Shown one piece after another: positions 9,759 to 49,941 of a DNA stretch of 64,000 nucleotides; the first letter of the stretch is position 1; the number at the start of each line of letters is the position of its first letter. The stretch covers positions 186,001-250,000 of the forward strand of contig CBFFSA010000006.1 of assembly GCA_965644495.1 (NCBI GenBank), in the 5' to 3' direction. The translations under genes were made by a program, and so were the position numbers. Under the pieces are notes generated by a model. That model was not told the DNA's origin, did no database searches, and was given only the letters and a program-made list of their open reading frames with translations. Origin of the DNA: Perkinsela sp. CCAP 1560/9. Its lineage: Eukaryota; Protista; Euglenozoa: Kinetoplastea.

Positions 9759-12224
9759 CCGTTACCACCCCCTTAGATATCCTAGTACGTTACTTATCTT
9801 CTTTTGTGATGAAATCTCCGGGTCACGAGAGGATAAGTAGCGTACTAGTTTACAGAGAAAAGTTTCGGATTTTTTCATTTCATTCAGTGGTAATTTTTTT
9901 CCAACTTCAGAGTTGCGCACATTTATTTCAGAATAGAAATACATACATGTATTTGCGCATGTACCAAAGAACTTCTGTTCACCATACAATACAGATGCTT
10001 CTATACTATTTCTACACTGCATACTAAAACTCTATTACTACCAAATGCGTCAACCATTGCCATCACTCATTTTTAGCGCGAATCAGGTTAGGGGTGCTCT
10101 AATGCCTCGAGACCCTGTCGTTGTTGTCACTGCTCCAGAGAACATTACCAACATCCTTCCGACAGCTCAGCTTCTCACGGAGCAGCATGTGGAAAGCGAG
10201 CGTGAGCGCAAGTCTCGAGTAGAGCTTACGATACAGCAGAAATGCAACATCTGCGCTTCTCTGGATGCAGGAAAAACAGAACGACTGTTTGCTCAAGAGT
10301 ATCACCTTGATCGAAGCACCGTCAGAAAACTATATAAAAAAAGCAAAAGTGGGACCGTTTGGTGCGCCTTGGCTGCGGTTCTATGGGCCAGTGTCACCCT
10401 CCGCGCCAGAATGCCGCACTATATGAGGCCGGAGCCAACATGCTGCAAACTCTGCGGGAAGCTTTCACTGGAGTTACGAAGACAATGATGTTTTCGTTTT
10501 TCTTTGGTAACTCAGCTCACTTTCGGGGCTTGTCTGAGTATGGCAAAGACAAGTTTTGGCTACGCTTTTGTCATTTTGCAAATGTGTGCCGACGCCGGGT
10601 GAACGGTTGTACACAACTTGTTCCTACCGACGCCGAAGAGTCATTCAGTAAATTTCTTGATATGATCGCTCTCATGAATGCCGACCGCGGTGGGTACACT
10701 ACCATTGTGACTGGTGACGAGACTTCGGTGTGTTGGGAGCCCGTAAGTGAGATAACCTATGAAATCCGTGGTACAGAGAGAGTAAAGGTTAAGACATGTG
10801 GAAAAGAAAAGGCCATGGTAACGGCTTGGTTTTGGGCAACGTCTGTGCTTGTTCCCGGTTCCTCCCCAGAACAACGTACTTGGGAACATCGTTTGTTTCC
10901 ACCACACCTGTTGTGGAGCGCTCAATCTTGTGAAGGTCGAGTTGCACGGGAAACGAAGGCAGCATTAGATCTGTATGGTTGCACTTCAACCGTTACAGGA
11001 TCATGCTGGATGACAGGAGATTCCTTTTTTCAATGGATGATAAAGGAATTTTTTAACACCAGTAAATATCCACCCAGCAAGACTTTATTGATTCTAGACT
11101 TGTACGCAAGTCACCGAACCGAGGTAGCCCTGTCCCTTCTTCGTCGCCAGGAAATCGACGTTTGTTTCGTCCCTGCAGGCTGCACAGCGCTGGTTCAGCT
11201 CATGGACTTGGCTGTCAATCGGCCGTTCAAGCAAAAGTACAAGGAGCTGTTCGCTCATTGGCGTGCAGCGACCAGAACACAAAAACGGCCACCCACTCGC
11301 CGGCTAATCACTCAGTTCGTTGCCGGAGCCCTAGCTTCCGTCGAGACTTCAGCTTACGAGAAGTCCTTTTGCAAAATTTATGTTCCTGCCTTACAGCGCG
11401 ATTTGCAGACCGTCCCGATTTCAGCGGTTGAAGATTTACGTGCCAACACCTTAGTTGTGACAGCCACGACTCAAGATACCGATGAAGAGACCGGTTTTAT
11501 TTCTCTTTTGGCGCAAACTTTAACTTTAGAGGATGAAGCGCGTCCCGAAGACGAGGAGTAAGGTCCTAGGCTATGTCCTAGGCTAATTTTGATTATTAAA
11601 GTATACTACTGAAAATCATCTTCTTGTATGTGCGCGGCATACATTTTAACAATTCTTGTATCATTATTTTCAAGGTGCGTTCAAGGCTATAGGTCAGGGG
11701 CATTGCCTATTTTCTTTTTTGACAATGTTGGGGTTTAGCGCTCCCCACCTTCCCGAGCTACGTCCACAGCAACGTTTTTCATATTATATTTTTACTCGTC
11801 GTATCTAAGTTTTTCTGTGGTTTTCCTTAGTGTCTTGTAAATCCTCTATAGGTATTCCAATTTCCGCGCGCTTCTTCCTTCAAGTGGCACAGTGTATGTT
11901 TGAAAGCAAAATACTTACGTACCTTTTTTCGTATACAACACATTATTTACATAGCATATCTCCTTTATCACAGCCATCACATAATTTTTAACTTTGATTT
12001 TGATGCCTCACTTGGACAGCGTGCAACTCCGACGAAAAGAACACATCGGCGAATACTTTCGACGCGGTTGTATCATGCAAAAACACCTTTTGGCACAAAG
12101 GTCACTCGAACTTCTTCTAGTACGCTACTTATCCTAGTATGCTACTTATCCTAGTACGTTACTTATCCTCAAACCGTCCATTTCGGAGACAGAATGCGGG
12201 ATATCTAAGAGGGGGGGGTAACGG
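9759..12224 (+). mobile_element. pogo/Tigger-like DNA transposon
   Basis: TA|CCGTTACCACCCCCTTAGATATCC ... GGATATCTAAGAGGGGGGGGTAACGG|TA flanking the transposase. Confidence 0.85.
10045..11561 (+). pseudogene. pogo-family transposase (HTH_psq + DDE_1, DD35D) with one frameshift near 10340
   Basis: ELTIQQK..EYHLDRSTVR HTH; GDETSV, LILDLYASH and LVQLMDLAVNRPFK catalytic motifs. Confidence 0.85.
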
Positions 12225-22534: not shown

Positions 22535-24155
22535 CTGTACCCCCCCTCTTTATAATAGGCTCGATTTTGCCCAAATGAACCTATATGGAAGATTAAAAGT
22601 TGGCACAGAAATCACCCTACATTTTGGAGCGAGGATCCAAGAATTGTTCAATCGCTAAGTGGACCCCGGCGATCTGCTAAAGTGAAATGTCCGGCACCAC
22701 CCCGCGCCATACCTCGAAGAAGCATATGAAAATAAATAACAAAAAATTTAAGACGGTGCAGGAAAATTAAAAAAAATCTTCCTCGGTTTGCCAAAAAAAA
22801 AAGAACCTATAAAGGGGGGGGTCGAGGCTATTAAACCCCTCCGCACCAATAAGGCGCCCCCCTTAACTTTTCAAAAAAATGTCCGTTTGAGCTGATTTTT
22901 GTTGCATTTTGCAGATCTCAACACAAAGACTGCGCGTGAAGAAACGAAACAAAAAGAAACCCATATGCAAATTTTAAAGAAGAATTACAATTTTTTCACC
23001 TTTTCCCCTTTGTTGGCCACACAAGCCTTGAGCCGAGCATCGCAGCTCAAAACCGAATCATCAATATATACACTTTTTATGAGGTCTTCCTTATTTGAAG
23101 GAGTGTACTCATCGACAAGCTCTTGCACCATACTCCACACGTTTTCTATGGGGGAAAGATCAGGGGAGTTCGGTGGCCAATTTGGCAATAGTGTCATTTC
23201 GGTTTTTTCAAGATAAGCCTTAGATTCTTTGGCAGTGTGCGATGTCGCTCCATCTTGCTGAAAAATACAGTTGGGAGGAAATTGTACTTTTTTAGTGTAT
23301 TAGAAACGCATGTAATTGAGTTGGAAGAGAGAACAACAAGTTTCCTATAGCCTACCCCCACGGCACCCCATACATGACACTTAGGTGCCCAACGCACTCT
23401 TTGTCGCTTTGCGGGCTTTTTGCCTGGAGCCATCCACATCTTTTTTCTATGATCCTTTGTATCGAACAGCTTTTCGTAAGTAAAAACTAAACGAGAGGTG
23501 TCCCACTTTAGTTCTTCCCATTTTAAAGCAAACGATACCCTTTTCTTTTTCTGTACCTCCGTCAGCCCTTGTGACAAAGGCCGTGACCCATACTTGTAGC
23601 CTAGGGAACGTATATCTCTATTGATGGTGTCAGAAGATACGTTTACACCCTTTCTCTTCAGTTTTCCACGAATCTTGCGAGAAGACCCATTTATGGGGAC
23701 CGCCGCTCGGCCCAAAGGCTCAAGAGCATTTTTAACAAGATTCTCCTTTTTTTGATCCTATTTTTTACTTCAGGGCTTTGAGTATAAATATTTTCCAGCG
23801 ATTCATTTTTCAAATATTTTCTAATATGTTTTACATTAACATTAAACTCGTGAGCTAGTTGTTTCTTTGCAACCCCCTGACCATACCTCATGCGCAATAA
23901 CACTTTTCCACTTTCTGTAAGAACACCCCTCGGGAGTCGATATGTATTTTTTGGCATGACAAGGTAAAAAAGATTAAAAAAAATATTTCTATTTTTTTTG
24001 TTTTTCCAAGAGACCTAAAAATGGCGGGAACGTGCAGATCTCAAAATTTTACACGACAAAGTGGTACGATAACCCCCCTAACCCCCCTCGTGCGAAAAAT
24101 AAGGGGGGGGTGCCTTTTTGATGCGGAGGGGTTTATAAACAGGGGGGGGGTACAG
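22535..24155. mobile_element. MITE (CTGTACCCCCC ends) with a Tc1 element nested in its right TIR
   Basis: TA|CTGTACCCCCCTCTTTATAATAG; right end TAAACAGGGGGGGGGTACAG|TA. Confidence 0.7.
22834..24133 (-). mobile_element. Tc1-like transposon, DD35E, frameshifted transposase (22985-23957)
   Basis: TA|AACCCCTCCGCAC ... TGCGGAGGGGTT|TA; HVWGAVG, QQDGATSH and WPPNSPDLSPIENVW; first Asp mutated (FTYEK). Confidence 0.85.
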
Positions 24156-24801
24156 TACCTTCTCAGGTATTAGGAAGAGACGCAACCCTGAGAGCTCATA
24201 TTTTCAAAACCAACGTTTTGTCTTTTCGATGCTACCCATGTTGAGTTCAAATACAATATTAACCCCTCGACAAGAATAAGGCACGCCCTTGTTTTTCGCG
24301 CGCGGGGACTCATGGGGGTTGCAGCACCATTTTTTCGTTCACAATTTTGAGATCTGTGCGTTCCTGGGGTTTTTAGACTGTTTTAAAAATTTGAAAAAAA
24401 TAGTTTGAGAAAGTAATTTTTGAGAACAGTTTTTGTAAAATTATGGTAAAATCCAAGTATCGTCCACCAAGTGGAGGGATGACACCATGGGGAAAATATT
24501 ATAATAATATTTTGATGCCACCGAATGCGACTCTCTGCTTTCCATCATGGGATGCACGACAGGCTTCTCTAGAATCTGACGTTATTGCGACACAGATGTT
24601 CCTCCGCGGTAATGTGGAGAATATTGGATTTGCGTGAAGTTGGTTTGACAAGAAAGCGACGTTTATAGATATTTGCTATACCTGTAGTACATTTTTTTAA
24701 GTTTACTTAGGGTGTTTTTCCGTGAGTTCTTAATGCTGGTCTTGTTTTTCCCTTTGTAAACATACAAGTTTGAAGTTTCTTCCGTTCTATATTCTATAAT
24801 A

Positions 24802-24925
24802 CTGTACCCCCCCCTAGTTATCTGTCGCTACTTTTCGAGAAAAGGTGACAGATAACTAGGGGGGGTAGGGGTGCGTCAGATAACTAGGGGGGTCAAAGTG
24901 CGACAGATAACTAGGGGGGTCCGTC
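24802..24925. mobile_element. Left end of a MITE of the same family as 62356-62704
   Basis: TA|CTGTACCCCCCCTAGTTATCTGTC plus CAGATAACTAGGGG repeats. Confidence 0.7.
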
Positions 24926-25754
24926 GTCAAAAAAAGCGAGGGAACGAAATGTTACAGAAACGGTATCTTTATTGCCTAGGAAAATTCCTTTCTACCCCAA
25001 TGGGGTACTACAAGCTGAAGGCATGCGCCTACGGGTTAAAAGAAGCCCAGAGAGTAATTTACACACATTTTATTGGGCTAAAATATTAATTACGTTACAT
25101 CAAAGGGTAAAGTCATCCATGGGTAAGGTCATCCATGGGTTAAAGTAAAACATCGGGAGCTATCGGACTCCAATTTGCACAAAGGTCACGACGGGAAAGA
25201 ATGTGAATATCACGGTTTTCAAACCCAGGGTAAAGGGGACGAGGGAGATACCAATAGTGCAGGTGAGGCAGTTTCCCACGGGAAAAACGGTATCTCCACC
25301 TTTTTCGGCGCCTGTGCCACAGGGGGGATACCGTATTTCATGTGGGAAACTGCCGCACCTACACTATTGGTATCTCCGTCGTCCCCTTTACCCTGGGTTA
25401 CATGGTAAAAACATGTTCCCTAGGACTCCTTACAGCTTCCCACGCGAGGAAGTCGTCGTCGCTGCGTTTATTTTAATCATACAGGGTGGTACCTGTAGAG
25501 ACATAAAATTGTGGTATAGGGACGCATGCCACGTATATACCATCAATTATTGAAGGGAATATCCTAGTGTGCCCCCCTCCCATTCAAGGGATTCCCGTTG
25601 GGTCCATATTACAAAGCTTCCACGAACTGCAGCGGCACACATGCTCTGTAGGCATTTAAAAGCTAACGGCTTATTGCCGTTAAAAAGGCTGTATAGATGA
25701 TTGCATGTGGTGTTCGGAAGACCTCTTGCCCCGATTTCAAATACTAGTAGATGA

Positions 25755-27201
25755 TGTGGATTGTCATACTCAGAGCAACACCTTTTTGTCATACTCAGTG
25801 CAACAAAAATGAGAAAAATATGGGTGTGTTCCGGATGTCAGGATTTTCGCATACTCAGTGCAACACTGTTTTTTCGGTCGGACAGCACCACGAACGGACG
25901 CGGGATTGTATGAGCCACGGACGCGGGATTGTATGTAAGAAACAATGGATTAAGAAAAAAAAATTATATAAGGAGAAGAAAAAAGGAGTACCTGGATAAT
26001 CGATATTGACGGAACAACATAACGCGTTTCTTTAGTAAAGAGATAAACTTTTTACCTTTACTGCTTTACAACTTACGGCTATACAACTTACTGCTTTCAG
26101 TATAGTACCGTCTCTTTATAGTAAAATTTAAGTCTCTTTGGGGAGACCCATTTCAAGCACTTTCGTGGCCGTTTGTTCAGTTTGTTGACCGTCTTACTAA
26201 CTTCGCGCTGTGTCAACTCCCCAAAAGTATCTGACTTGGTGTGATACTACCGGACCAGACCATTCATGTTTTCAACGGCCCCCTTTTCCCACGAATGGTA
26301 AGGATGACAAAAGTAAGATTTGCATCCTAACTTCTTGTTGATGGCTTCATGATTGGTATTTTCAGTTCCATTGTCATACGTTATGGTATGCACTTTGTAT
26401 TTCTTTAAGGCTTTCAGCACCTGTGTTTCAACTTGTTTTGACTGCTTGGATTGAAATACACGAAGGACAACAAACCTACTCTTTCGTTCACAAAGGGTCA
26501 GGATGAAATACCCACTTTTCTTTGCTCCCTCAATTAAATCGGCCTCCCAATCACCATACCGACGTCGTGTGTTTACTATTTGGGGACGATGATCGATAGA
26601 AACCCGGTTTGGAATGGTACTTCGACCATGAATGCGTCGAACATAAGGCCGCCTTCCGCGGATCCGTAGGCACTTATGAATCTTCCCCCATTGTCTTTGT
26701 CTCGACGAACAAATCGATAGATTGTGGAAGTGGATGGTGAACCTTGTGAGCCGACAACAAGTGTATTAGCAACCTGCTCCGGGCTGTGAAGCTTTCGGAG
26801 ACGGGTCTTTACATTTTTTTCAAGACTGGCTCGAATTAGACGTGGTCTGGCCCCTTTATTAACCAGTCGTCTCTTGGCAACACGATGGGCACGGCTGGAA
26901 CGGTATTGCCCACCTCTGTTCCTGTTGCGTGCCAGCTCACGACATACCGTACTTGGGGACTTATCAATCGATCGGGCAATTTCCCTCTTCGTTGCGCCAC
27001 TTTCAAACATCGTTTGAATATCTTTGCGATTGCTTTCAGATAATCTTCTGTACTTTTGCATGAATGAACTCAATTATGTAGAAATTAGTATATGAAGTGT
27101 ACTATGTAGAAATTAACCTTTTGTTGCGCTGAGTATGACAATTATTATTATTTTGTTGCACTGAGTATGACAATTTGTTGCACTGACATTGACAATCCAC
27201 C
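25755..27201 (-). mobile_element. IS30-family element, 1447 bp, 3-bp TSD (TGA)
   Basis: Ends TGTGGATTGTCATACTCAGAGCAACA / TGTTGCACTGACATTGACAATCCACC; TGA at 25752-54 and 27202-04; IS30 transposase inside. Confidence 0.9.
26097..27062 (-). pseudogene. IS30-family transposase (HTH + DD33E), with one frameshift (~26678) and one TAG (~26248)
   Basis: REIARSIDKSPSTVCRELARN; HSPEQVA; STIYRFV; SIDHRP; GDWEADLIEG; ITYDNGTE; FCHPYHSWEKGAVENMNGLVR; LNKRPRKCLKWVSP. Confidence 0.92.
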
Positions 27202-27739
27202 TGACATCTCGGGTTAGACATTCTGCGGCGGTGTAGTATGGCATTGTATTTGTCGCGTTTCCGTTGGTGTGACGCATCCATGGCCTCCTCCCATGGCACT
27301 ATCAGTTCGATTATGTATTCTGTTCCATCACTGAGTGTCACAAGTGCATCTGGGCGTAATAGGATGTCTGAAAACCACCAGGATGGAAGATTCCGCTCCC
27401 CTGGTAGATCGAAATGCTGTTGGGCTGTGTTCTGGGAGGCTCGAAGAAACTTTGATAACTCTTTAAGGACAAAGTTATGACGGAGCGTGTATCTATCTTG
27501 CGTGAGGGCAACTTTGCAACCAGTAAGTATGTGTCGTACGGTTTCCGTTTCTCTCTTACACAGAGTACATTTGGTGTCCGTGTACATTGTGATTCCCCAT
27601 CTTCTTCGGTTTGCCTTCGTGGGGAGCGCCGTAGTTGTCATGGCGGCAGCGTGGAAACGTGATATTTTCTCATTTCTGTTACCGTTGACAGCAGCTACAC
27701 AAAAAAATCCACCTGGCACTATCCCCACTGGCAGGCTGG

Positions 27740-30660
27740 AATATGAACGATTACTAGCCCGCTCAAGCTATCGCAAAGTAAATCACGTCCAAATAGCCTC
27801 CTGGCGTGACATCTGTCACGGTATTACAATAGGATGCTCTTCTGCCTCGGAAGCCGAAAAGCTCAATGTAGCCTGACACCTTCTTGGGGCCGTCAAACGC
27901 TACCTCTTTATCCCCTCAGAAAAACTAAGCCACCGACAGCTGGCGCACGAACTTCGTTCACGTTTTTTAAAACCTGATCAGGAATGCAATCCTCCGAAAA
28001 CGCCCATTCCTCCAGCTAATGATAAATCCTCAGCGGCAGAGAAACGATCGCTTAGACTTCTTAGAAGTAGAGCGATATCGAAGGCCGCGCGCGCCCTAGA
28101 CAGTACGGAGAGAGATCCCCTCACCCCAGCAGAGATAAAGCGGGCCGCGGCCGTTTTACACCCACGCAGTATCGCTTCCCTATGCCGCGCCCCTCTGAGG
28201 ACACTACGGTCAACGTAGCTGGTCCAGATACCATTGAAGCGAATCGGCGGATGCTCCTGCGGCGGATGCTCAGCTCCTGGCCCCTCAGGTTGGACCCGCG
28301 AACTCTTGTCCCCCATCTCCTTATGGACGAACATGTTCTAGCATGCGTCGTCTGGATTGTAAAGCGAGCGTTGGAAAACACAGCTCCACCAGGCCTACGA
28401 AATGCCCTAACGCAGAGCGACTTATGTCTCTTCAGGAAAGATGACATCCCAAGTGACACCCCCGCATGCCGCCCGATTGCTTTGGGAGAGCTATTTTTAA
28501 AACTAGCGAGCTCCTATGCACGGTCTCAAGTTTCGAGCTTCACGGAGAAAAAATTCAAAGATATTCAATTTGGTGTGGGTGCACCACATGGAACGCATCA
28601 CATCATTTTTCGTTCACGTCGTGCTTTCAGAAGCAGTGTGAACAATACTCTACTAACAGTTGACCTTAAAAATGGCTTCAATACGATTGAACGAGCTTTT
28701 ATTGCTAGAGTCATACGTCAATGCCTCCAATTACAACCTCTGATTGGGATCTTTCTCTTCGCATACAGTCTAGTCTTATTCGTGGACTCGAACCCATCTC
28801 TAGCAGCCGAGGCGTACGTCAGGGAGAGGCGTTAGCACATTTATAATGCATATTAACTGCACGTTTATAATGCATACTAAGCGGCACATTCAAATGCATA
28901 TAGCACATTCACATGCATAACAGCACATTCACATGCATAATGCACATTCACATGCATATTAAGCGGCACATTCACATGCATAAAATTTTAGGCACGGATT
29001 TCAACTTTTTCGAAGTTGGTGCGGGGTGCTATGGAAGCTCACCTTTGCTCCCGGTGAGGCCCCGGAGTTGCGAGAGGCCTCCATACCCCACAACTACCAC
29101 CTTCCCCCCCTATTTAGCGGGGGTCGCGCGAGCGACCCCTGATAAATGGGGGGAAGGTGGTAGTTGTTTTGGGGGAAATGAGAGGCCGAACGCACGGAGG
29201 GGCCGGCCGGGCCAATGAGCCAATAATATCTACACGTTTTTTGAATTTTGTGATTAAAAGGGAAGGATCAACAAAATTGAGAAATATGCATGTGAATGTG
29301 CTATATGCATGCGAATGTGCTATATGCATTTGAATGTGCTGTTATGTATGTGAATGTGCCGCTTAGTATGCAATATCAATGTGCAGTAAATATGCATTTG
29401 TATGTGCTATATGCATGTGAATGTGCTGTTATGCATGTGAATGTGCTGTTATGCACCTGAATGTGCTATATGCATGTGAATGTGCTAATATGCATCTGAA
29501 TGTGCTATATGCATTATAAATGCGCCGCTTAGTATGCATTATAAATGTGCGGGCGGCAGATCCTTTGCACCATCTACCCAAGCAGGCAGCTTTGACTCTC
29601 TTCCGACACTGTGGAGCAGTAAGAAGGAATCACATAGTACAGAGTCACGAATTGGAATCAACATTGGAGGCGAACAGGCAGATTGACGCTGCAGTAATGA
29701 ATTTCGCGGAAGAGCTACTAGGTGGGTCCGGAACGCTTGAGAAGAACCCGTTGCAAAATAAAACTTTTACGGGTGACCTCATCGGATCCACTCTTTGGCG
29801 AAAACGCGGAGCAGCTTTATTCTGATACCCCCCACGCGGTCTACCCCCCCCCGAGTCTCATTTTGGCGGAAGAGCACAGTCTTCAAACAAACTCGAATTA
29901 CGAACACCCCTAAGTCATAAGCACAAGGCTCTCTTCGCGCAGCTCTCCAACAAATATTCGAAATACTGGATGGAAGCGGTCCCTAATCGCCCCGAATTTT
30001 ACCGACGCGACTCGGAGTGGCAGACTGCCCTCCGCATGCGTTATCTCCTAAGCCTAGTGTCGTCCCCAAGCATACAATGTGTATTCGGGGAACTGCATCC
30101 CAATGACTACTTCCCAGTGCATGCTCTTGATTGCAGTCGAGCACGCGGCAAGACGGGAGCATCGAGACACGCCCTAGTAAAATCATGCTCCTCAAATATT
30201 TTGAGACAGTATGGATTTAACCCCGACATTATGGAGCCCAGCTTCGAAGAAGGAAAAGGCCTAGACTTATTATTTCAAATGGGACATCAACTTGTTATGG
30301 TGGATGTCACAACAGCCAACCCATTAGCTCCTTCTTACGTAGAGATGGAGAGTAAAGCGCCCGGAAAAACCCTTGTCCGGGCAGAGGCCACGAAGCACAA
30401 GACCTACGACAGTCTTGCAGCAACACATGTAATGAAGCCTTTTCCCCTAGCCTTTTCTGCATTCGGTGTTCCCGGAAACGAAACTCTAGCATTTCTACGG
30501 AAGTGCGGAGGGTACACGTCGGACAGGCACGGTTTTCTCCGCCATGCTATACAACGTGGCCATACAACGTGGCAACGCCCAAATCATTTCGGCCGCCACG
30601 TTTCAATGGCGGCAAACGGGTATCTTGTAGGGAGTAATTATTCATAAATAATATAAAAAA
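27740..30660 (+). mobile_element. Second degenerate CRE-like retrotransposon, interrupted at 28829-29558
   Basis: KRYLFIPSEKLSHRQLAHELR matches copy 1; CRPIALGE, QFGVG and VDLKNGFN RT motifs; HALDC and DVTTANPLAPSY RLE region; A-rich 3' tail. Confidence 0.85.
28829..29558. mobile_element. Non-autonomous element: inverted 19-bp tandem arrays flanking the ~175-bp palindrome
   Basis: GCACATTCACATGCATA arrays (28835-28982), palindrome 29047-29219, ATGCATGTGAATGTGC arrays (29284-29550); related copy at 40370-40630. Confidence 0.75.
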
Positions 30661-33036: not shown

Positions 33037-33063
33037 TAAAGATACAGTTTCTGTACCTTGTTG
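33037..33063 (+). other. 3' part of a kinetoplastid spliced-leader (SL) exon
   Basis: AAAGATACAGTTTCTGTACCTTGTTG: conserved ACAGTTTCTGTAC core followed by 7 nt ending in TTG; no GT donor follows. Confidence 0.75.
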
Positions 33064-33884
33064 TTCATCTTTTCTTTCCCCGGCAACGGGCATAATCTTA
33101 CTGTTTTATATGCCCGTTGCCGGCCGGCACTAAGGCCGAAACTGTCCCTCTTTCTCGGCGAAGTAGGGGACGCGCTTCCACCCCATCACCCCTCCCCGGC
33201 TCACTCCTTGAGTGGGTTTTCTTCCCTCCCCGGCTTTCTTCCCTTCGCGCCCTTTCCTTCCCGGGGAGCCATGCGCCATGGTGGCCTCCCTTGAGGACCA
33301 CTGGGCGTGGCTCTGCCTCGTCTTATCGCGAGGCAGCGGTCGGTTGCAGTGCGCCCCTCCGGCTGCGTAAAGAGGTGGTGAGTTGCCTGGACCACCTCTA
33401 CCGACTGGGACCGAGTCGGTTGCAGTGCGCCCCTCCGGCTGCGTAAAGAGAGGGCGAGTTGCCTGGACCCCCTCTACCGACAGAGTCCGAGCTAAACCCG
33501 CTTGGTGCGACATCCGTCAATACGGAATGTGCCGATGATATCGGCTGTCGCATCAAGGGCTGTATCTCTGCGCCAACGAGCGCATGAACATCAACTACTG
33601 CACATTGATAATGCATAACGTGCCGCACATTGATAATGCATATAGCACATCCGTTAGGGTGGCCAGGTGGCTACTTTTTCAGAGGGTGGCCAAGTGGCCA
33701 CTTTTTCAGGGGGTTGTCAGCTGGCCATTTTTTCGGAGGGTGACCAGGTGGCCACTTTTTCAGGGGGTGTCCAGATGGGAACTTTTTCGGGGGGTGGCCA
33801 GGTGGCCTCTTTTCCAGGGGGCGGCCAGGTGTCCACTTTTTCAGGGGGTAGTCATCTGGCCACTTTTTTGCGGGGTGGCCAGGT

Positions 33885-36021: not shown

Positions 36022-36344
36022 GACCCACAACAAACCTCCCTTGCCTCCTCCCGTACACACCCGCAAGAAACGCTCACTGTAGCAATATTCTCATAATTTA
36101 TGAGAAGTGTGAGTGGCTCTTCTACATAAAAAAGTCGGAAGGGGCGTATGGTGAGGGCCCGCGTGGTAGGCCTGAGCCATACGCGGCGTCGTTAGTGGCA
36201 AGCAATTTGCGAAGCCCAGTTTAGCAACAACCACCGCTTTTTGACGAAGCAGCTACCACCGCGACATCGTTAAAGTTAAAATATTCGTTTCGATGAGTAC
36301 TCATCCAAACTACGCCAATCTGGCTTAAAAGTTAAATTTTAAAA

Positions 36345-36416
36345 TTCCGATACCGGGAATCGAACCCGGGTTTTGCGGGTGAGAGCCGCATGTGCTACCG
36401 ACTATACCATATCGGA
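36345..36416 (-). tRNA. tRNA-Glu(CTC)
   Basis: Cloverleaf; acceptor TCCGATA/TATCGGA; anticodon arm TGCGG-CTCTCAC-CCGCA. Confidence 0.95.
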
Positions 36417-36491
36417 ACAAGAATGTAACGGATGAAATGTTTGGAATTGAGAATAGGAGGCTTGATGAATTACCGCTGTGCACATCAAATA

Positions 36492-36563
36492 GGCTGAATG
36501 GTCTAGTGGCATGATTCCCGCTTAGGGTGCGGGAGGTCCCGGGTTCGATTCCCGGTTCAGCCC
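36492..36563 (+). tRNA. tRNA-Pro(AGG)
   Basis: Acceptor GGCTGAA/TTCAGCC; CCCGC-TTAGGGT-GCGGG; T5 terminator. Confidence 0.95.
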
Positions 36564-36585
36564 TTTTTCTGTACATGGAAACAAA

Positions 36586-36658
36586 TACCTCAGACGGGAC
36601 TCGAACCCGCAACCTTTGGCTTAGGAAGCCAACGCCTTAACCATTAGGCTACTGAGGC
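36586..36658 (-). tRNA. tRNA-Arg(CCT)
   Basis: Acceptor GCCTCAG/CTGAGGT; TTGGC-TTCCTAA-GCCAA. Confidence 0.95.
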
Positions 36659-36688
36659 GCCTGAACTGATGTGGGATGGAGGAGAAAA

Positions 36689-36769
36689 CGAGGACGGCAG
36701 GATTCGAACCTGCGCGTGAGAACACACTTGATTTCGAGTCAAGCCTCTTAACCACTTGAGTACGCCCTC
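36689..36769 (-). tRNA. tRNA-Ser(CGA)
   Basis: CTTGA-CTCGAAA-TCAAG; long variable arm. Confidence 0.93.
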
Positions 36770-36789
36770 TAATTGTGCGGTTGCGTGGC

Positions 36790-36861
36790 GATCCTGTGGC
36801 TCAAAGGTAGAGCGTCAGACTCCGGATCTGAAAGTTGCGGGTTCGAGTCCCGTCAGGATTA
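36790..36861 (+). tRNA. tRNA-Arg(CCG)
   Basis: Acceptor GATCCTG/CAGGATT; TCAGA-CTCCGGA-TCTGA. Confidence 0.93.
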
Positions 36862-36923
36862 TTTCCGACTAACGTATACCAAAGACCAAGGGGCCCTAAC
36901 CTCATGCTCGTAGCTCCTTCAAC

Positions 36924-36995
36924 GATCGCTTGGTCTAGTGGCATGATTCTCGTTTTGGGTACGAGAGGTCACGGGTTCGATTCCCGTAGCGGTCC
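36924..36995 (+). tRNA. tRNA-Pro(TGG)
   Basis: CTCGT-TTTGGGT-ACGAG; T5 terminator. Confidence 0.94.
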
Positions 36996-37057
36996 TTTTT
37001 ACTCTCCGGCAAAACATTTTCCTCCATTTTCAGAGAATCTTCATCCCCACGGAGTGT

Positions 37058-37130
37058 GCCCGTCTAGCTCAGTCGGTAGAGCGCCAGACTCTTAATCTGG
37101 TGGTCGTGGGTTCGAGCCCCACGGTGGGTG
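37058..37130 (+). tRNA. tRNA-Lys(CTT)
   Basis: CCAGA-CTCTTAA-TCTGG; T4 terminator. Confidence 0.95.
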
Positions 37131-37190
37131 TTTTCTCCCCTCGCCAGACCGTTCGCTCGGTGAGCGCAGAGCGAGAGGAAAAATGAGTAA

Positions 37191-37262
37191 GGTCTCATAG
37201 TGTAGTGGTGAGCACAGCGGACTTTGAATCCGCTAACCTGGGTTCGATTCCCAGTGAGACTG
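37191..37262 (+). tRNA. tRNA-Gln(TTG)
   Basis: Acceptor GGTCTCA/TGAGACT; GCGGA-CTTTGAA-TCCGC. Confidence 0.94.
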
Positions 37263-37317
37263 ATTTAGCAATTCTTACCCATTCTAACAAGCAAAGTGAA
37301 TGTAAGACCCGAAGCAG

Positions 37318-37390
37318 TCCTCCGTGGCGCAGTAGGTAGCGCGTTAGACTGTTAATCTACAGGTCGTTGGTTCGAACCCAACCGGAGGAG
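37318..37390 (+). tRNA. tRNA-Asn(GTT)
   Basis: Acceptor TCCTCCG/CGGAGGA; TAGA-CTGTTAA-TCTA; T4 terminator. Confidence 0.94.
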
Positions 37391-49364: not shown

Positions 49365-49941
49365 TCTTCTCCACGGGAGATCAGCGTGAGTCTTGCGTAA
49401 AGAAGATGATGTTAAGGTGTCGCGTGTCGCAGTGTATGGTTTCATCAAGCGCGATGAATCGCTCGGGGGAACACTATAAGTGCCTGCGTTGAGGCGGTGG
49501 TCGAGGCCGTCGCCTGCGCGGCAAAAACCTTTTTAAGATACCGAAGAAACGGCCAATTGTTACGCGAACGGCCAATCGTTATCAACACGCGGGGAAGATT
49601 TGGTGACTGGGAGTGCAACCAAATAGAGGGATCAAAGCACAGTGGGTTCTTTCTAAGTTTGCTGGAACAGAAAAACAGATTTGGTATACTGAAGATACTG
49701 CGCACGAAGAAGAGTGAGGTCGTTGCAGAGGCCATTGGTAGCATCCTGGAACACTATCTTCTTTCATACGATTACGTATGGCAATGCGTCAGAGTTTGCG
49801 AAACATGGGAATGTAAACACGCTTCTTGGGTGTGACTCATTCTTTTGCAAACCCTATGCCAGGTGGGAAAACGGTAGAGTAGAAAACTTTGACGGTGTGG
49901 TTAGAGATTTCTTCTCCCCAGACTATGGGGAAAGCCATTAA
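49365..49941 (+). pseudogene. Second, divergent IS30-family transposase relic
   Basis: ERPIVINTRGRFGDWECNQIEG; frameshift; HTITYGNASEF..LGCDSFFCKPYARWENGRVENFDGVVRDF. Confidence 0.85.

Follow-up and report, generated by a model that had tools for sequence, protein, structure and literature searches.

Can a bacterial insertion sequence live on as a transposon of a eukaryotic nucleus? IS30 is a prokaryotic family of insertion sequences (ISs) with a DD33E motif, terminal inverted repeats (TIRs) of ~20–30 bp, and target-site duplications (TSDs) of 2–3 bp. An element with a transposase gene of this family, 1,447 bp long, occupies positions 25755–27201 of the DNA considered here, a stretch of 64,000 nucleotides (the window) taken from contig C6 of an assembly of 21 Mb in 110 contigs, the genome searched in this study. 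The element splits the open reading frame (ORF) of a retrotransposon. An earlier note, made from the sequence of the window alone, had proposed that the element belongs to an IS30-derived lineage of eukaryotic transposons. We consider it about 90% probable that 25755–27201 is a mutated, non-autonomous copy of a DNA transposon with a bacterial IS30-family transposase, and that it is part of a kinetoplastid-like protist's nuclear genome.

Prokaryotic insertion sequences have very rarely passed into eukaryotes; when all IS families were compared with 430 eukaryote genomes, only IS607 was recovered (Gilbert and Cordaux 2013; PMC3673617). The eukaryotic superfamilies listed under IS names are ISL2EU, IS3EU, and IS481EU, with more expected and IS30 unmentioned (Kojima and Bao 2023; PMC10045372). 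Neither a eukaryotic IS30 lineage nor the name "IS30EU" was found in the literature that we searched, and within this scope of published papers the earlier statement that no described eukaryotic IS30 superfamily was known stands. A second eukaryote species with this IS30 lineage was likewise not found in protein, GTDB, and metagenome searches, which leaves one organism as the source of all the elements described below.

Structure of the Element and Its Transposase Gene

The transposase gene runs on the minus strand of the window, and the element is bounded by inverted repeats and a short duplication (Table 1). The TIRs measure 25–26 bp, with arms of 25 nt at 84% complementarity in the repeat analysis, and together with the 3-bp TGA duplication they agree with the ends of ~26 bp and the TGA target duplication that had been described for this locus. 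Each end has three repeat sites, consisting of the TIR and two copies of its inner 16–23 nt, and the subterminal copies at one end are inverted relative to those at the other. The terminus GTGGATT of the window TIR is also present in bacterial relatives (L106–L112).

Table 1. Features of the element, its target duplication, and the interrupted host ORF, in window positions
Feature	Position	Strand	Basis
Downstream half of split host ORF, H-LLVFEIGARG to stop at 25547–25549	25550–25753	−	112 genomic paralogous matches
Left TSD copy (TGA)	25752–25754		Letters read directly; matches 27202–27204
Left TIR, TGTGGATTGTCATACTCAGAGCAACA	25755–25780	+	Arms 25756–25780 / 27176–27200
Two left subterminal copies of inner inverted-repeat motif CATACTCAGTGCAACA	25786–25808, 25850–25865	+	Direct-repeat family and inverted pairs
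19-nt motif present twice, 23 nt apart	25894–25935	+	Second copy only in the window element (0/3 sister copies)
IS30-family transposase pseudogene, ATG at 27061	26110–27061	−	Three-frame translation, Pfam, NCBIfam, alignment to intact sisters
Two right subterminal repeat copies	27119–27141, 27151–27173	−	Inverted pairs at 100% and 96%; direct-repeat family
Right TIR	27176–27201	−	Inverted pair with left arm
Right TSD copy (TGA)	27202–27204		Letters read directly
Upstream half of split host ORF	27204–27728	−	zf-RVT E 3.5e-8 (Pfam); 116 genomic paralogous matches

Domain models and motifs agree on the identity of the transposase. Its N-terminal piece (27061–26693) contains an HTH_38 domain (Pfam, E 7e-15) and its core piece (26684–26250) an rve domain (Pfam). 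On the NCBIfam model NF033563 ("IS30 family transposase"), whose cut-off of 80 bits is set for the whole protein, the core piece scores 163 bits and the N-terminal piece 44 bits. The motifs GDWEAD, TYDNG, and SWEKGAVEN can be read directly in the translations, with 33 residues counted between the Asp of TYDNG and the Glu of AVEN, and D175, D230, and E264 show little or no variation in the alignment. The family assignment, the HTH domain, the three motifs, and the D-33-E spacing are all as the earlier note had them. Its description of a full-length transposase is correct for the length of the gene but not for its integrity. Compared with three sister copies, the window copy has lost 1 bp in the C-run at 26685–26689, which shifts the reading frame; it has a TAG stop at 26247–26249 at a Gln codon of the intact copies; and a 7-bp deletion near 26130 places the last codons out of frame. 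A fourth lesion, a 23-bp duplication, falls in the non-coding tail, where it accounts for the repeated motif listed in Table 1. The 1-bp deletion, being in a homopolymer run, could be an assembly error; the TAG stop and the 7-bp deletion are not in such runs, and the TAG stop is common to the window copy and one sister copy (L003, C1:2214116–2215557). The window copy is a dead, non-autonomous pseudogene copy.

Insertion into an R2-like Retrotransposon

The element is flanked by the two halves of a single retrotransposon ORF. The upstream half encodes the C-terminal part of the retrotransposon protein, in which a CCHC zinc finger precedes a PD..E.K endonuclease motif, and when the element and one TGA are taken out, ...MSNPRC joins H-LLVFEIGARG in frame. 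In a protein-level search of the genome, the two halves adjoin each other without any gap at dozens of paralogous loci, for example at C9:368404–368901 (residues 11–175) followed by 368905–369078 (residues 2–59) and, on the minus strand, at C4:601834–602328 followed by 601639–601833, with more examples on C1, C3, C10, and C47. A further paralog, L045, which was analysed from its 1.5-kb flank, is uninterrupted across the insertion point (...MTNPATF-LLVIEVGARG..., ERKMTNPATFLLVIEVGARG). The claim that excision restores the host reading frame is thus borne out both by direct reading and by the contiguous paralogs. The search for empty-site copies that had been suggested as a check gave a divided answer: contiguous copies exist at the protein level, at 45–52% identity, but searches of the genome with both flanks found no paralog at the DNA level that spans the insertion point.

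The paralog L045 also helps to identify the host element. It contains an RVT_1 domain (109 bits) and a zf-RVT domain, and its protein aligns to the R2 proteins 9nl3 and 9dou over residues 31–693 (E ~3e-29), in a stretch that extends from the reverse transcriptase to the C-terminal endonuclease region. Host retrotransposon proteins show the motifs C..C...H....C and PD...E.K. On the basis of the two domains and the alignment to 9nl3 and 9dou, the host is an R2-like non-LTR retrotransposon of the restriction-like-endonuclease type. HERO, the name given to it in the earlier note, is one candidate for its clade, beside NeSL, CRE, and R2. As in R2, a reverse transcriptase is followed by a CCHC zinc finger and then by a C-terminal PD..E.K endonuclease. 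Unlike R2, the host element is present in hundreds of dispersed genomic copies, and for this reason it is not obviously site-specific. To our knowledge, non-LTR retrotransposons with a restriction-like endonuclease are known only from eukaryotes, and because the target gene is of this type, the locus provides clear proof of a nested insertion.

Other repeats are found close to the interrupted ORF. A second R2-like remnant at 28182–30647, on the plus strand, faces the interrupted one and comprises a reverse transcriptase–like ORF (28182–28835) and an endonuclease-like ORF (29970–30647). Right after the host ORF, at 25300–25467, lies a MITE-like repeat of ~170 bp that is unrelated to the host element; it has an inverted partner at 25222–25297 and at least 67 genomic matches at 83–94% identity.

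IS30 Copies in the Genome

The window copy is one of many. At least 130 protein-level matches to IS30 were found in the genome, and a DNA search returned three more near-full copies at 96% identity to the window element, together with fragments and diverged copies. The genomic subfamilies stand at 98, 72, 65, 59, and 40–45% protein identity. An intact ORF of 317 aa is present in two copies of the window subfamily, at C1:822080–823030 and C18:39005–39955 (L002/L059 and L004/L060). Intact sister ORFs score 250.7, 245.3, and 253.1 bits on NF033563 over model positions 1–267; the 317-aa ORF that scores 250.7 bits on this model reaches 61 bits on the IS481 model. A heavily decayed IS30-like fragment also lies within the window itself, at 49420–49917, some 22 kb away from the element; its identity to the intact ORF is 29%, and it has five stops (E 6e-16).

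Insertions in two subfamilies could be delimited by their duplications. In the window subfamily, the TSDs are TGA for the window copy, ACGT or CGT for L002, AGT for L003, ACT for L005, and CAG for L007. One of these copies, L005, is an internally deleted derivative of ~830 bp that has kept both ends and its TSD. The subfamily at 59% identity comprises seven copies of 1,424 bp that are 97–99.8% identical; all seven have an intact 315-aa ORF and are flanked by a perfect 3-bp TSD that differs from copy to copy (CTT, GGA, TAC, GAT, CCT, GAC, and TTT). Their ends start GGCGGATT and include subterminal repeats, and judged by their sequences the seven copies look recently active. A count of copies with both TIRs and TSDs had been proposed as a check on the lineage, and it yields 12 insertions on many contigs, each with a duplication of its own. 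The TSD is 3 bp in 11 of the 12; in the other it is either 4 bp or 3 bp with an additional base. No target-site consensus is evident among the 12 insertion sites.

Because the same TAG stop occurs in the window copy and in L003, which sit at different sites with different TSDs, a defective lineage appears to have moved after its transposase was lost. We infer that the defective copies were presumably mobilised in trans by intact copies. Values of pN/pS are 0.16–0.57 among three copies of the 59% subfamily and 0.9 for the intact pair of the window subfamily; because these ratios derive from just 8–26 differences, they are suggestive only. Upstream of the ORF, in the left end of the 59% subfamily, pyrimidine tracts followed by AG are visible. 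In the window subfamily, nothing convincing as a trans-splicing signal was seen upstream of the ORF.

Relationship to Bacterial IS30 Elements

Outside this organism, the nearest proteins in a set of 5.8 billion proteins, in GTDB species genomes, and in metagenome contigs are 44–51% identical to the protist transposases, and bacterial, plasmid, and metagenomic collections contain no relative above ~52% identity. Near-identity to the IS of a co-cultured bacterium had been named earlier as an observation that would speak against a eukaryotic lineage, and the best match of ~52% is far from it. Most of the named nearest relatives are aquatic Verrucomicrobiota (Akkermansiaceae, Puniceicoccaceae, and Lentimonas). 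In a maximum-likelihood tree of 104 proteins, of which 16 are from the protist and 88 are prokaryotic or metagenomic, all 16 protist rows form one clan (ultrafast bootstrap 99, SH-aLRT 89, and 100% of bootstrap trees), and a quick tree of 87 rows gives the clan a support of 91. A phylogeny against ISfinder IS30 members had been called for; in the present tree, set against prokaryotic and metagenomic proteins, the protist copies form a single clade. This clan adjoins the IS30s of aquatic Verrucomicrobiota, and the tree singles out no exact bacterial sister.

One bacterial relative allows the ends to be compared. It is present as four identical copies of 1,214 bp (L106–L109) in a Verrucomicrobiae chromosome, where each copy starts with GGTGGATT and has a 3-bp TSD (CTG, ATA, GTT, and TCC), with a single inverted repeat per end and no subterminal copies. 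The protist elements resemble bacterial IS30s of this kind (L106–L109 and the Lentimonas-type cluster) in having one ORF with HTH_38 and an rve-type DDE core at the 33-residue spacing, a full-length match to NF033563, TIRs of ~25 bp beginning GGTGGATT, and a 3-bp TSD. In contrast to the bacterial elements, they are ~200 bp longer, with a protein identity of 44–51%; each of their ends has two or three extra copies of the inner inverted repeat; and they reside in a eukaryotic nucleus, where non-autonomous and deletion derivatives appear to be mobilised. The comparison with L106–L109 indicates that the bacterial terminus and stagger were retained in the protist elements, whose multi-site ends are an addition. 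The model match, the HTH domain with D-33-E, the TIRs, and a TSD of 2–3 bp are all those of IS30; only the prokaryotic host is missing. These relationships suggest that an aquatic bacterium passed on an IS30 once, long ago, and that the lineage then diversified in the nucleus; the nearest relatives are IS30s of the Verrucomicrobiota type.

The Host Genome and a Second Assembly

The genes around the element are those of a eukaryote. An NXF/Mex67-type export factor, a double AAA ATPase, and a Kae1/TsaD homolog are encoded in the window in a run of genes on one strand; for the NXF homolog, a search of a protein atlas returned broad eukaryotic clusters only. Long ORFs at 50.9–63.9 kb are all on one strand, and nine tRNA genes (Glu, Pro, Arg, Ser, Arg, Pro, Lys, Gln, and Asn) lie on both strands within 1.05 kb (36344–37390). 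Elsewhere in the genome, kinetoplastid membrane protein 11 (PF03037) is matched at 150 bits; the paraflagellar rod family PF05149 has no genomic match, and the controls for that search were silent too. We read the host as a kinetoplastid-like protist. At 33044–33065 there is a short sequence (ACAGTTTCTGTACC...) that we take, as a lead only, to be a spliced-leader-like remnant. A duplicated 20-nt motif stands just before this remnant. In a different part of the window, at 10359–11561, a 400-aa ORF has a pogo-type DDE_1 transposase domain (E 1.6e-14) and belongs to a transposon-rich island.

A second record of the insertion comes from the ENA assembly ERZ24900291, which contains contigs 99.95–100% identical to this genome, flanks included, and because of this identity is taken to be from the same organism. 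It is also the source of the only hits that are closer than the bacterial relatives. Its 196.5-kb contig ERZ24900291:ctg4005l (L242) is 100% identical to window 24102–29558, so that both junctions are covered, and it has on record an ORF that extends out of the host gene and over the right junction into the terminus of the IS. The contig departs from the window at 29558/29559, where it has an extra ~390-bp copy of a common hairpin-type repeat; this is either a polymorphic insertion or a difference between haplotypes. Because ctg4005l is identical over the junctions and differs at 29558/29559, the same insertion is carried by a second, non-identical assembly. The junctions are therefore supported by two assembly records, which probably share reads.

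Discussion

Could the element be bacterial contamination, or a chimera that arose when the assembler joined bacterial to protist DNA? Its transposase family is otherwise prokaryotic, and the second record comes from a metagenome-style assembly, both of which are compatible with such an origin. However, both flanks belong to one retrotransposon ORF that closes in frame, the 12 insertions lie on many large contigs and each has its own TSD, prokaryotic and metagenomic relatives stop at ~52% identity, the GC content of the element resembles that of its surroundings, and the same junctions recur in the second assembly. We regard contamination as very improbable. The earlier argument, that an insertion this precise speaks against contamination, is strengthened by the contiguous host paralogs, the 12 TSDs, and the second record. 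More far-fetched still is a laboratory artefact, in which an IS30 of the cloning host would have hopped into cloned DNA. Such cases are documented for eukaryote genome projects (PMC3673617), but here a comparison with 5,426 E. coli genomes gave no match at the DNA level, IS30s carried by plasmids reach 41% identity at most, and the protist genome contains many diverged subfamilies together with decayed copies.

If the element is at home in the protist nucleus, it might be assigned to a known eukaryotic superfamily (IS481EU, IS3EU/GingerRoot, or Ginger) instead of to IS30. All of these have rve-type DDE cores without an HHCC finger (PMC10045372), and the IS481 model does produce a weak hit. That hit amounts to 58–62 bits against a cut-off of 224, whereas the IS30 model gives 245–253 bits against a cut-off of 80; the TSDs are 3 bp, compared with ~4, 15, or 25 bp in IS481EU and 6 bp in IS3EU (PMC10045372); and the termini read GGYGGATT, not TGT..ACA or TA..TA. 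We give such an assignment hardly any credence. Membership in IS30 could also have been acquired more than once, through several independent transfers from bacteria into the protist. Protein divergence among the subfamilies reaches 60% and is as large as their divergence from bacteria, and a bacterivorous protist would be constantly exposed to bacterial DNA. Against this stand the single clan formed by the 16 protist rows among 88 prokaryotic rows, with a bootstrap of 99, and the derived subterminal repeats that both examined subfamilies share and that the examined bacterial relative lacks. Repeated transfer is therefore unlikely, and one transfer remains the preferred reading.

A transposition pathway can be proposed for the element. 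The DDE transposase would be supplied by intact sister copies and may bind the TIRs and the repeated subterminal motifs, which are predicted sites. It would then move the element and insert it with a 3-bp staggered cut. At this locus the element entered the 3′ part of the R2-like retrotransposon ORF, which is split within a codon. The chemistry could be copy-out/paste-in via joined ends, by analogy with IS30. Expression of a bacterial gene may have been eased by the promoter-less polycistronic transcription and trans-splicing of kinetoplastids.

The 12 insertions with TSDs, the intact young copies, and the confinement to a single protist clade support the IS30-derived eukaryotic lineage that had been proposed for this locus. 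On balance, we lean toward the fuller reading that these elements constitute the first IS30-derived eukaryotic superfamily ("IS30EU"). A whole IS with its ends would have passed from an aquatic bacterium to a bacterivorous kinetoplastid-like protist, its ends would have been rebuilt into multi-site arrays, and its subfamilies would have drifted as far from one another as from bacteria, while the lineage stayed active and its intact copies mobilised defective ones. The concept is the same as for IS481EU, IS3EU/GingerRoot, and ISL2EU, in which a lineage descended from a prokaryotic IS family proliferates within a narrow range of eukaryotes, and IS481EU also occurs in protists (PMC10045372). The IS family, the TSD length, and the termini differ, and the protist elements match the IS30 model and not the IS481 model. 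IS607-like and IS5-like sequences in eukaryotes are likewise prokaryotic ISs acquired by horizontal transfer, and with ~40–50% amino-acid similarity to the nearest bacterial IS they are about as distant as the elements described here (PMC3673617). In contrast to those sequences, the present case concerns IS30 and includes many subfamilies, with intact copies that are nearly identical and bordered by TSDs.

An IS30 lineage that retains a bacterial terminus and a 3-bp TSD in a nucleus serves as a clean natural experiment on the requirements that a bacterial transposon has in a eukaryote, among them expression without a promoter of its own, entry into the nucleus, and recognition of its ends. The near-identical intact copies offer a compact transposase of 317 aa that, from its sequence, would appear to be active in a eukaryote and that can be tested experimentally. 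To this the locus in the window adds a nested insertion with paralog-based closure, a stop shared by two copies, and a comparison of ends with a bacterial relative.

The family also extends to a deep second protist clade, at 40–45% identity, represented by L075, L076, L079, L080, L082, and L084 on contigs C10, C48, C19, C12, C50, and C20 (G000). The transposases of this clade have a conserved C-terminal extension ending ...LLVDSSQE(S), which is missing in the bacterial relatives.
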